From positions 62,001 through 126,000 of the forward strand of contig NIVC01000142.1 of assembly GCA_002269645.1 (NCBI GenBank): DNA of 64,000 bases, given 5' to 3'. Position numbers and translations under genes: made by a program. The notes beneath the pieces are model-generated. The model was not told the DNA's origin, ran no database searches, and saw nothing but the letters and a program-made list of their open reading frames with translations. The first letter of the stretch is position 1, and every line of letters begins with the position of its first letter. This document shows positions 10,401 to 13,400 of the stretch, piece after piece. Source of the DNA: Macrostomum lignano (lineage: Eukaryota).

Positions 10401-13400
10401 ATGAGGAAATCGTCTCTGACAGATTTGATCTGGTGCAGACAGGCGGCCGACAGAGAGAAATTTGGGAATTTCGATGAGCTTGTGACTCGAGGGGATGCGC
10501 GGGCCCTGCTTGAGATCTGCATCTCGCTAAACTGACTCGAGATCGCGCCGGAAAACTAAGCGCAACCCCATCGTTGCAGCGGTGATAATCTTCGCAGCCG
10601 CCTTCCAGCCTCCTTCATCAATTTGAGTCGCGCTACTGACGAATGTTACGCAATCCTCTGCCGCCTTCTCGAAGGCAGGAAACGGAGAAATTCGATATTC
10701 CAGGCGGGGATCTCTATCCGAATCCCTCTTGTCCTGGGATCGCTGTTGCATCATCGAGTAGCCCTGAGCTGTCTAGGCCCAGCACGGGGGTCCGGGGTAG
10801 GCCGGCTCGCAGCTGGAAGCGGCCTACCCAGATTTTTGGGCGTCTCTCTCGATGCTCGCTCGAGAGATTCTCGAGTGTTAGTGTTCTCCCTCCCACATCT
10901 GCCTTATTATTCAGCACTTACGATGCTGATGCAGATAAGCATGAAAATCTGCTGATCACCTAGTAAGATGTGCGAACCGCCACGGTTTCTTTGCTTGCCT
11001 AAACAGTTCAATTAACGGATTCAGGCTTTCCGTGTTGGTTTTGTTCCGAGCATCTGTGTAGTTTAGGTGCATTTTTGTGCAGCTGCGGTAGTGACAATCT
11101 AAGGGCGAAGAATGAGTGCGTTGGAGCGAGGGACAGGGAGTGGGGTAAGTGTAGGAATGAAGGAGAGGGAGTGGGGTAAGTGTAGGAATGAAGGAGAGGG
11201 AGTGGGGTAAGTGTAGGAATGAAGGAGAGGGAGTGGGGTAAGTGTAGGAATGAAGGAGAGGGAGTGGGGTAAGTGTAGGAATGAAGGAGAGGGAGTGGGG
11301 TAAGTGTAGGAATGAGGGACATTGAATGGGGTGGGTGTAGGAATGAGGGAGAGGGAGTGGGATGGGTTTAGGAATGAGGGACAGGGAGTGGGGTGGGTGT
11401 AGAAGCGAGGGACAGGGAGTGGGTGGGTGAAAGGTTGGTCGGTGATGACAATAAAGGTCAAATATTCAATATTTGCTGTCCCCCTACCTGTGAATTTGAT
11501 ATAGACAAGCAAAATAAAGGAAAAATATCAAAGCAGTCACTCACTGTCCAGCCGAAGCCGGTCGGCGGCCCTCCATCTCTTTGTACTGCGTCGGCTTTTT
11601 GCAGCAGAAATAGGCCAGCACAGAGCAGAGCACCAGGATTAGCGCGGCGCAACCGGCGCCAACGACGATAATGGCGCTGGTTGGAATCTCCGGCAGGGTG
11701 CCCACTGGCGGGATGATGCGGGATTTTATGTTTAAATAAGGCAATGCGCAGCCAGGGAGAAGAGAAGCAGTCATGCCATTTCCGCCGATCCTTGAGCACG
11801 CACACACTCACACAGGGTGTACAGCCAAGAAGACAGACTTTCTTATCGCCAGGAGGTGTACACTCTGTGCCAATTGAGGGTTGGCTCTTACAGGCGAGAT
11901 CCTCACAAGCCCCGAACTATCGTGGCCACGAACGGAATCGAACCCGGGTCCTAGGAATCGAACTCGGGTCCTAGTAATCGAACGCGGATCCTAGGAATCG
12001 AACCCGGGTCCTAGGAATCGAACCCGGGTCCTAGTAATCGAACTCGGGTCCTAGGAATCGAACCCGAGTCCTAGGAATCAAACCCAGGTCCTAGGAATCG
12101 AACCCGGGTCCTAGGAATCGAACCCGGGTAATAGGAATCGAACCCGAGTCCTAGGAATCGAACCCAGGTCCTAGGAATCAAACCCAGGTCCTAGGAATCA
12201 AACCCGGGTCCTAGGAATCAAACCCAGGTCCTAGGAATCGAACCCAGGTCCTAGGAATCGAACCCGGGTCCTAGGAATCGAACCCAGGTCCTAGGAATCG
12301 AACGCGGATCCTAGGAATCGAACCCAGGTCCTAGGAATCGAACGCGGATCCTAGGAATCGAACCCAGGTCCTAGGAATCGAACCCAGATCCTAGGAATCG
12401 AACCCAGGTCCTAGGAATCGAACCCAGGTACTAGGAATCGAACCCAGGTACTAGGAATCGAACCCAGGTCCTAGAAATCGAGCCCAAATCCTGGGAATCG
12501 AACCCCATATCTAAGATGAGTGAGCCGGACACTCCTGTCTCACAAAAAAGCAGACCAGAGTTGAAAACGGCCCTTTTGAGGGCCACGCGCTATATTAAAA
12601 ACAGGGCGCACTCGTTCAGGGCTTCTTTCAGTTTACTAGCAGACTATAAAACGAGAAAAAAGATACCAACAGTTAGTGTAAAACACTGTTGCTACAATCG
12701 AGGACACAGCTGTCAAAATTTTTTATTTGTTCCGCGCCCCGCGCATCCTAATGACTTGCCGTGACCGGCCCCTCATTTCAGGCTAAAGCAAGTAAGCAGA
12801 ACAAAAGAGAAAACAAGGAGAAAAACGTGTTAATGTGTTCTGGTCCAATTTGGGGATTTTTGCCGTTGCAAAGTAGGAATAATTGACGGAGAGAAGGCCT
12901 TGACAATGCAGTGCAGGACTAGGACGGGACTGGCTAGTCTAATTTAACACGGGCTATTGCGCTTTCAACATCACAGGCACCAGCAGATGCCAGAATCCCC
13001 AATCACCCTACTGTGCCAGGTGTGCACGTGTAATGTGTCTGCGTCTGTGTCTGTGGGCTCAGCGAAGCATGCTAAATATGTACATGCATTAGGCTTCTTA
13101 TATACACAGGGCAGAAATGCGTTGCTTATCTATTCATGCAGTTCAGGGCAAGCGTGTGCTGCGAGCTTGTGCTTATAATAATCCCCATCATGGCTGATTT
13201 CATCCTGGCCAGACTCCCCCCTCATCCAACTGGGTCATTCTTATCTTGGATGGGAGAGAAGCAGAGAATAGAGGGCGATGGGGAGAGGGGAGAAGGGAGA
13301 GGGGAAAGGGGAGAGAAAGGAGGGAAAAATAGGAGAGATGGGAGAGGATAGAGGGGAGAGAGGAGAGGGGAGATGGAAGAGTTGAGAGGAGAGAGGGAAG

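Follow-up and report, generated by a model that had tools for sequence, protein, structure and literature searches.

Tandem RNA polymerase III B-boxes in Macrostomum lignano form a hypervariable minisatellite that probably arose from an old tRNA-type SINE

Within a window of 64,000 bp of the Macrostomum lignano genome (contig NIVC01000142.1, positions 62,001 to 126,000 of the forward strand), slicing in register revealed a tandem array in which 29 units of 20 bp, free of indels, span 580 bp. TRF returned a single array at 11934-12505, with a period of 20, 28.6 copies, 90% matches and 0% indels, the degenerate units being the two at the high-coordinate end. The consensus of the unit on the minus strand was TAGGACCTGGGTTCGATTCC, in which the spacer and the B-box (Table 1) together make up the T-arm of a tRNA, with its 5-bp stem and TTCGATT loop, and 3 nt more. 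On the plus strand, the consensus was GGAATCGAACCCAGGTCCTA, carried by seven units, with GGAATCGAACCCGGGTCCTA, the unit named in the original prediction, ranking second (five units) among the 14 unit types detected in the window array. The presence of about 29 tandem B-boxes on the minus strand, as originally predicted, was confirmed.

Most units were also found to carry an intact B-box, as had been claimed. The exact GGTTCGANNCC was present in 19 of the 29 units, so that the array matches the ETC-type consensus at the sequence level, and 22 of the 29 kept all six bases with which human TFIIIC220 makes specific contacts (PMC11811891). In the whole window, the strict pattern gave 20 minus-strand matches, 19 of them in the array and one at 33120-33130, compared to 0.35 expected from dinucleotide shuffles.

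The array lies near a putative TM exon, the acceptor AG of which was read directly at 11705-11706 on the minus strand, 229 bp from the array and in agreement with the 'about 230 bp' given previously. When this exon was joined to the exon ending near 23900, the product was collinear with residues 790-851 of PAA46606.1, an annotated paralogue of the host gene (39% identity, E=2e-10). On the basis of this paralogy, the array would be located within a last intron of about 12.2 kb, upstream of the TM exon and with the SINE described below in sense orientation, which supports the intron placement originally proposed. Protein searches with the exons of the host gene gave no M. lignano match, and therefore the gene is taken as unannotated; an exact-protein look-up of ten window ORFs, including those that touch the flanks of the array, gave no match in the collection either.

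Table 1. Features at the array locus and the reference SINE copy (window coordinates)
Feature	Position	Strand	Description and basis
Putative last coding exon of an IgSF/FN3 gene without annotation	11541..11704	-	TM helix, short tail and stop codon; ORF translation
Interval from the SINE homology to the putative 3' splice site	11707..11759	-	No significant similarity to SINE beyond about 11760
Body of a diverged tRNA-type SINE	11760..11933	-	Directly after the last B-box (GTTCGTGGCCACGATAGTTCGGGGC...); collinear homology to the SINE at 40095-40456
Minisatellite	11934..12513	-	9-nt spacer TAGGACCYG + 11-nt B-box GGTTCGATTCC per unit; TRF, unit table
5' flank of the array in SINE orientation	12514..12560	-	...GAGACAGGAGTGTCCGGCTCACTCATCT; by eye, a weak resemblance to an A-box
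Upstream exon of the same IgSF/FN3 gene	23900..24309	-	ORF; GTGAGT donor candidates; paralogy
Related intact SINE, reference copy	40095..40456	-	tRNA-like head, body and A10 tail; sequence and alignments

The start of the array coincides exactly with the B-box of a tRNA-type SINE that has diverged, and the SINE body adjoins the last B-box. When this body was compared with the related SINE at 40095-40456, the best BLAST segment was 84% identical over 44 bp, and the local score was 51 compared to 17.7 +/- 2.1 for 1000 dinucleotide shuffles (0/1000, z=15.7), in support of the homology that the original prediction had proposed. The similarity reaches about 11760 (p about 0.003), and the interval beyond it, up to the putative splice site, may be the 3' region of the SINE. 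A SINE-derived splice acceptor for the TM exon, suggested by a global alignment, was discarded, as similarity past about 11760 was not above chance. The reference copy itself sits inside an 11-bp minisatellite, and its head contains an A-box-like GTAGCCCAGCGG and a B-box-like GGCTCGATTCC.

On the other side of the array, the 'degenerate tRNA-like 5' part' of the original prediction could not be established. The Rfam tRNA model found nothing in 12514..12560, ARAGORN produced one low-stringency call on one collapsed construct only, and the stretch upstream of the first B-box was about 20 nt shorter than a tRNA head needs, with no convincing A-box seen; this flank may represent what is left of the SINE head after decay or truncation. 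Neither an A-tail nor a target-site duplication was recognisable at the old host SINE (11760-12560), and no further SINE copies were detected in the M. lignano sequences L005 (see below) and L006, the comparison of the family covering two copies. As judged from sequence, with a unit that maps to the B-box/T-arm and a 3' flank that is SINE body, beside a 5' flank that is only doubtfully head-like, the classification of the array as a SINE-derived tandem repeat is supported.

A second copy of the locus, reached via the neighbouring mucin-like gene, was found in an independent M. lignano contig (GenBank NIVC01002330.1, here L005), with identical array junctions and an identical TM exon. There, the array occupies positions 4216-4855 and consists of 32 units in scrambled order, 16 of them with the strict B-box. 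Identity between the unique flanks of both copies was 98.8-99.4%, with 12 mismatches over 1235 bp, whereas the unit maps agreed at only about 12 of 34 aligned positions, some unit variants being shared. The array is therefore a fast-evolving VNTR, with its units reordered despite flanks of about 99% identity. Higher-order patterns seen locally among the units, with CFCFC in the window and both NNN and LL in L005, further indicate ongoing unit duplication. With head-to-tail units whose number and order vary beside conserved flanks, the array is a minisatellite, or VNTR, although this comparison of instability is limited to the two copies of the locus. Every neighbouring array also differed in copy number between both copies (9.5 vs 22.7, 45 vs 25, 17.3 vs 4.3 and 35.5 vs 38.5).

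Other arrays of the same type were searched for, and none further was found in 113 kb of M. lignano sequence. The exact unit dimer was absent from metagenome and prokaryotic genome collections, where a relaxed search for three B-boxes spaced 20 bp apart detected only four short unrelated arrays in microbial contigs, a result that is uninformative on animals. By a rough estimate, based on a repeat fraction of 15% in 764 Mb and on the density of SINEs in the window, chance alone would give B-box-seeded arrays in numbers of order 10^2 per genome.

Tandem repeats made up 42% of the window, which contains 44 arrays of at least 150 bp, and simple plus tandem repeats account for 15% of the M. lignano genome (PMC5730564). 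With 44 tandem arrays in 64 kb, of which the B-box array is one, no function has to be invoked to account for it. The CpG observed/expected ratio in the non-repeat DNA of the window was 0.79; an argument from CpG decay as a sign of germline methylation was dropped, as the C/T polymorphisms at the two CpGs of the unit were not mirrored by G/A changes on the opposite strand.

The most probable explanation is a hypervariable minisatellite born from 20 bp of an old SINE of tRNA origin, in which the B-boxes are passengers and the array as a whole is most likely selectively neutral. This SINE would be sense-oriented within the last intron of the gene for an IgSF/FN3 membrane protein, and its 20-bp segment (the T-arm with its Pol III B-box, plus 3 nt) would have been amplified in tandem by replication slippage or unequal exchange, in a genome that generates minisatellites at a very high rate. 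Hairpin-driven slippage is a weak candidate for this amplification, as one or two units as ssDNA folded no better than shuffles (-1.5 kcal/mol for the single-unit hairpin as DNA). Minisatellites and satellites derived from SINEs are already known, including some with box B units (PMC6947457; PMC10702118). The change in length between both copies, 29 versus 32 units, is smaller than in the neighbouring arrays and counts against the neutral view. Even so, the array would probably be neutral irrespective of any incidental binding of TFIIIC.

The original prediction had proposed a comparison of decay between the B-box and the spacer. Pooled per cell, variation was indeed lower in the B-box half (4.9%) than in the spacer (11.1%), and 7 of 11 B-box columns were invariant compared to 2 of 9 in the spacer (Fisher p=0.08). 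However, when variant states were counted as events, the difference of 12 in the spacer versus 6 in the B-box was not significant (p=0.054), even less so without the two edge units (7 versus 5, p=0.26), and other arrays in the window showed variation clustered equally or more strongly. Within the B-box, 16 variant cells fell in the six TFIIIC contact columns and 17 in the five non-contact columns; the 'N' positions 59-60 were invariant, whereas the contact bases C56 and C61 varied. Units with a broken B-box have also been copied, as observed for C56T (type H) and C61A (type L). The tests for B-box-specific protection were therefore negative or inconclusive, although the B-box may be under weak constraint, given that this half is the less variable one.

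These results bear on a first alternative, namely a functional platform of the extra-TFIIIC (ETC-like) kind, where the B-boxes would recruit TFIIIC without productive Pol III transcription and serve as boundary or insulator, as condensin/cohesin loading site or as TFIIIC sink within a Pol II gene. Binding as such is chemically plausible: besides the perfect B-box match in the unit, all six contact bases were kept in 23 of 32 units in L005 and thus in 45 of 61 units overall, so that the DNA should bind TFIIIC in vitro. The tauB module has a high affinity for the B-box, enough to anchor TFIIIC (PMC11811891), and the S. pombe IR-L and IR-R, with five B-boxes each, are bound by TFIIIC without Pol III (PMC7474672). 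The similar length of the array in both locus copies would also fit such a role. However, selection on the B-box was not evident, its contact bases were no better conserved than the rest, B-box-dead units have been amplified, and unit turnover was fast for a flank divergence of about 1%, in an array that is one among the 44 in the window. Furthermore, the footprint of DNA-bound tauB is about 35 bp (PMC11811891) and the period 20 bp, so that neighbouring sites would be mutually exclusive and no more than about one unit in two could be filled. The functional role that had been suggested for the array (TFIIIC platform or sink, insulator, or an effect on splicing) was thus unsupported, and an ETC-like platform is unlikely. 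Its full form, in which a natural array of 29-32 B-boxes is occupied by TFIIIC up to about every second unit and works as an ETC-type boundary or SMC-loading element within a Pol II gene, stronger or weaker according to the length of the VNTR allele, is regarded as improbable.

An action at the RNA level appears very improbable. According to this possibility, a sense intronic transcript with about 30 T-arm-like hairpins (CCUGGGUUCGAUUCCUAGG) would change how the TM exon, 229 nt downstream, is spliced, or bind enzymes that recognise T-arms, TRUB1/Pus4 being known to recognise GUUCNANNC in T-arm-like stem-loops. The array and the host gene share their orientation, a T-arm-like 6-bp stem with a 7-nt loop can form at each unit junction, and a 200-nt stretch of the array folded as RNA far better than shuffles (-101 kcal/mol, z=-4.7). 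Against it, the array is located far upstream of the usual branch-point/polypyrimidine zone, the single-unit hairpins are weak, the host gene is without annotation, and both the length and the unit order of the array differ between the two copies of the locus.

The idea of a Pol III transcription unit or a small-RNA source, which would produce tRNA-fragment-like RNAs from reiterated internal promoters, is even harder to sustain. B-boxes are present, the spacer plus unit start (TAGGACCTGGG) agrees by direct reading with 5 of the 9 positions specified in the A-box consensus TRGCNNAGTGG, and the A-box is known to be of low affinity and flexible in its spacing to the B-box (PMC11811891). In contrast, a credible A-box at tRNA-like spacing was absent, as was, by direct reading, a T4 terminator within the units. 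Rfam gave no tRNA match at the gathering threshold, its sole match in the array being tRNA-Sec (23.6 bits, E=3.2), and the 'tRNA-Ser' called by ARAGORN at 12402-12495 spans repeat junctions, so the array holds no full cloverleaf above the model threshold.

An origin other than the SINE, from either a decayed tandem tRNA-gene cluster or an assembly artefact, is hardly credible and has been largely refuted, since the ARAGORN call and the fact that long-read assemblies can mis-size arrays are opposed by a 20-bp unit that is a T-arm and not a tRNA gene, by the homology of the flanking body to the SINE, and by the identical junctions and common unit variants in two independent contigs.

The array is a real and well-explained feature, and SINE-derived box-B tandem repeats have been described previously in snakes. 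Snake sSat3 (Vassetzky et al. 2023, PMC10702118) is likewise a tandem array born within a tRNA-type SINE, with box B in the unit, units more homogeneous than the dispersed SINE copies, alternating subvariants and tens to hundreds of monomers. However, sSat3 units comprise box B and a portion of the body, 67 nt in all, and the family occupies many loci in each genome, whereas the flatworm unit is 20 bp and essentially T-arm/B-box only, from one known locus in two copies. The array also resembles the minisatellites derived from Alu and B1 (Jurka & Gentles 2006; Bois et al. 1998; PMC6947457), where a short internal SINE segment became an unstable VNTR by slippage or unequal exchange, although those come from other segments of 7SL-derived SINEs, such as (CGGGAGGC)n or (GGCAGA)n, and do not reiterate a type-2 B-box. 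Xenopus satellite 1 and Hydromantes Hy/Pol III are reportedly tandem repeats from SINE- or tRNA-like elements as well (PMC6947457, PMC10702118) but are high-copy satellites whose units measure about 200 nt or more; for Hy/Pol III, the lack of a box B has led to doubts about an origin from tRNA (PMC10702118).

The array has in common with the S. pombe mating-type boundaries IR-L/IR-R, and with ETC sites of yeast and animals, that several B-boxes occur outside any complete Pol III gene; in those elements, DNA with only B-boxes has boundary or architectural roles through the binding of TFIIIC without Pol III (PMC7474672). In IR-L/IR-R, about five B-boxes are dispersed in a conserved 2-kb repeat, with TFIIIC occupancy and genetics demonstrated, whereas the flatworm array consists of 29-32 abutting B-boxes at 20-bp spacing with no sign of constraint.

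If neutral, the array would represent a clean, datable case of a SINE promoter element that seeded a VNTR in a very minisatellite-rich animal genome. If bound by TFIIIC, for which nothing in the analysis argues, it would offer a B-box array of natural origin and polymorphic length in an animal capable of transgenesis, where the effect of TFIIIC dose on boundaries and host expression is directly testable. Arrays of this kind also generate false tRNA or ncRNA calls, as with the ARAGORN tRNA-Ser here and, in neighbouring arrays, the Rfam calls of tsr1 and isrG.

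Tandem Repeats Finder returned the B-box array as a single call (11934-12505, period 20, 28.6 copies, 90% matches, 0 indels), which in register comprised 29 units of exactly 20 bp each, in agreement with the approximately 29 originally predicted. In the minus-strand consensus unit, TAGGACCTGGGTTCGATTCC, 9 nt of spacer precede GGTTCGATTCC, which agrees in full with GGTTCGANNCC, the type-2 Pol III B-box consensus in use in, e.g., PMC12193147 and PMC2774510. Strict matches to this consensus numbered 20 in the window, compared to 0.35 expected from shuffles, and 19 of them fell within the array, so the canonical B-box had rightly been described as intact in most units. 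By direct reading, the consensus unit as RNA is the whole T-arm of a tRNA gene plus 3 bases; in the computed hairpin, a stem of C49-G65, U50-A64, G51-U63, G52-C62 and G53-C61 carries the loop TTCGATT. The window copy contains 14 unit types, and two degenerate units were found at its high-coordinate edge, as is common at minisatellite ends. An ARAGORN 'tRNA-Ser' call inside the array (12402-12495, minus strand) was discarded as an artefact of the repeated T-arms. The B-box array is real and had been correctly described.

Beyond its last B-box, the array gives way to GTTCGTGGCCACGATAGTTCGGGGC…, which was collinear with GCAGCCACATTAATTTGGGGC…, found after the B-box of a typical tRNA-type SINE of the same window, and the similarity ran on through the SINE body as far as about 11760. 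The best BLAST segment between both showed 84% over 44 bp, and the gapped local score was 51, compared to 17.7 +/- 2.1 in dinucleotide shuffles, of which 0/1000 reached 51. Therefore, the array begins exactly at the expected B-box position of an old, diverged SINE copy, which supports the proposed birth inside a SINE head. The degenerate tRNA-like 5' part that had also been proposed was not established, as region 12514-12560 was not convincingly tRNA-like: it is about 20 nt short of the length of a tRNA head, gave no match to the Rfam tRNA model even at E <=5, and yielded a single relaxed ARAGORN call, from one artificially collapsed construct. The SINE origin as first inferred was largely correct.

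Location of the features discussed (window positions unless a contig is named) and copy numbers of the shared arrays
Feature	Position	Strand	Content
B-box array, window	11934-12513	-	29 units
B-box array, L005	4216-4855		32 units
tRNA-type SINE, typical	40095-40456	-	A-box-like GTAGCCCAGCGG, B-box-like GGCTCGATTCC, body, A10 tail
11-bp minisatellite	40024-40796		(ATTCTCCCCTG)n
Second tRNA-type SINE	~32990-33180	-	head GTTGTAGCCTAGTGGTTAAAGC…GGGGTTCGATTCCCG; strict B-box at 33120-33130
Hairpin	12564-12608	+	AAAACGGCCCUUUUGAGGGCCACGC
Gene 1	exons ~30047 down to ~23900; TM exon 11541-11704	-	clear Ig and FN3 exons
Gene 1 paralogue	58282 to ~64000		annotated as PAA46606.1
Long exon	61276-62169	-	99-100% identity to PAA46606.1
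Mucin-like ORF	4014-5906	-	98% identity to BOX15_Mlig015473g2
Coding 33-mer array, mucin-like ORF	4028-5199		35.5 copies window, 38.5 L005
31-mer array			9.5 copies window, 22.7 L005
34-mer array			45 copies window, 25 L005
32-mer array			17.3 copies window, 4.3 L005
Metagenome array, L001	1630-1821		20-bp, B-box-like
Metagenome array, L002	9156-9224		20-bp, B-box-like
Metagenome array, L003	1414-1468		20-bp, B-box-like
Metagenome array, L004	206-290		20-bp, B-box-like

The typical SINE, an intact copy, sits within an 11-bp minisatellite present on both of its sides, so this minisatellite is older than the SINE insertion; ATTCTCCCC is a possible, ambiguous target-site duplication. The second, unrelated tRNA-type SINE bears the sole strict B-box of the window outside the array, and its head scored 28.8 bits with the Rfam tRNA model, just below the gathering score of 29.

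Pfam matches in the exons of the window were to Ig and FN3 domains, and the nearest solved structures to the exon products were contactin, Robo and DSCAM-type adhesion molecules. Gene 1, the host of the array, had no counterpart in the protein collection searched or in the GenBank annotation of NIVC01002330.1, and is a pseudogene or else a gene that annotation has missed; its paralogue corresponds to the M. lignano 'hypothetical protein BOX15_Mlig016458g1'. The near-identity of the long exon and of the mucin-like ORF to M. lignano proteins assigns the window to this free-living flatworm and not to a vertebrate. When the gene 1 exon ending at about 23900 was joined to the TM exon, the product was collinear with residues 790-851 of PAA46606.1 (39% identity, E=2e-10), and a GTGAGT donor in compatible phase was found at the upstream exon. 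From this alignment and donor we infer that the array is intronic and would lie, in sense orientation, within the last intron of gene 1, of about 12.2 kb. Its distance to the putative TM-exon acceptor was 229 bp, close to the 230 bp originally estimated.

A second copy of the locus was present in GenBank contig NIVC01002330.1 (L005; assembly Mlig_3_7), collinear with positions 3000-16000 of the window. It carries the same B-box array, with the first units and the SINE-body junction as in the window, unique flanks of 99.4% (494 bp) and 98.8% (741 bp) identity, and an identical TM exon. With one letter per unit variant, the unit maps read ABCDDCECFCFCGCHIHCJKGHJLGGMNG in the window and AODDCCCFCGHGPQGHFKNNNRLLSGHJLTGG in L005; their ends could be aligned, whereas the interior was scrambled and the order strongly different, with local duplications such as CFCFC, NNN and LL. 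Every copy number of the other arrays common to both loci differed as well. The shared unit variants show that both arrays come from one ancestral array with rapid turnover since, and the B-box array behaves as a hypervariable VNTR. The copies may be alleles, line differences or duplicated assembly blocks (Mlig_3_7 holds 180 Mb of duplicated blocks of at least 95% identity; PMC5730564), and part of the differences could be long-read consensus errors.

Slower decay of the B-box than of the spacer had been suggested as a sign of function. Variation per cell was indeed lower in the B-box than in the spacer (4.1% vs 12.3% in the window, 5.7% vs 10.1% in L005, 4.9% vs 11.1% pooled), but variants are copied along with units, so the cells do not count as independent. 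When each distinct variant state was scored once, the spacer had 12 and the B-box 6 (one-sided p=0.054), and 7 vs 5 without the two degenerate edge units (p=0.26); the least variable 11-column stretch of the unit lay 1-3 positions off the B-box. Human TFIIIC220 makes base-specific reads of G53, T55, C56, G57, C61 and C62 (PMC11811891), and these bases were not spared: 16 variant cells fell at the six contact positions vs 17 at the five others, and C56 and C61 varied whereas the 'N' positions 59-60 were invariant in 61/61 units. Units with C56T (type H) and C61A (type L) were themselves duplicated. Of the window's remaining minisatellites free of indels, most had within-unit variation clustered equally or more strongly, a control that is approximate as some arrays drift out of register. 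Uneven decay across the unit is not diagnostic of TFIIIC-related selection.

The array DNA could chemically bind TFIIIC, judging from the 45/61 units of both copies that keep all six contact bases. In tauB, 35 bp of DNA are ordered around the 11-bp B-box (PMC11811891), and at a 20-bp period neighbouring sites would exclude each other, with at most about every second unit occupied. Natural B-box clusters with function do exist, namely IR-L and IR-R of S. pombe, with five B-boxes each and TFIIIC bound without Pol III (PMC7474672). An ETC-like TFIIIC platform is an improbable, minority reading of the B-box array, and the functional interpretation in the original prediction is unsupported.

The B-box array is quite probably a neutral, fast-evolving VNTR, for which the T-arm of an old SINE would have provided the 20-bp seed. 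SINE-derived minisatellites are established for Alu and B1, and satellites from SINE- or tRNA-like elements have been described (PMC6947457, review). Closest among known cases is the snake satellite derived from Squam3 (PMC10702118); the B-box array is of the same kind, in a flatworm, but its unit is unusually short and almost purely B-box/T-arm, and it is so far known from one locus.

Tandem repeats make up 42% of the window and form 44 distinct arrays of 150 bp or longer, roughly one per 1.5 kb; the 37 kb of DNA outside arrays contains 3 tRNA-type B-boxes. By rough inference, the probability that a 20-bp unit seeded at random includes such a B-box is about 8x10^-4, giving some 0.04 B-box arrays per window and in the order of 10^2 per genome. 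Therefore, a single B-box array in a many-window scan needs no special explanation. Short tandem arrays of T-arm/B-box-like 20-bp units (2.8-9 copies), unrelated to that of the window, were found in 4 metagenome contigs among 241 million records; one example is (GGGGTTCGAATCCCGGTAGG)x4.2, and L001 additionally bears four tRNA genes.

Periods of the window arrays ranged from 2 to 283 bp, and their density is extreme, far over the 15% of simple and tandem repeats in the M. lignano assembly (PMC5730564). The coding 33-bp minisatellite encodes the 11-aa unit TTPADQSAESV and follows a signal peptide and a Cys-rich N-terminus in the mucin-like ORF, of secreted type; the annotated BOX15_Mlig015473g2 has merely 344 aa. 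Minisatellites also yielded spurious ncRNA calls, such as the ARAGORN tRNA-Ser, Rfam tsr1 at 29148-29759 (plus strand; 84 bits, E=1.6e-19, gathering score 235), and isrG and MIR7526 (4079-5144, plus strand) in the coding 33-mer array. The histone 3'-UTR stem-loop-like hairpin 51 bp from the B-box array scored 27.8 bits with Rfam Histone3 (gathering 34; E=0.001 for the whole window) and has no histone ORF nearby; its sequence is identical in L005, and on the minus strand the hairpin and then TTTT lie immediately upstream of the SINE remnant.
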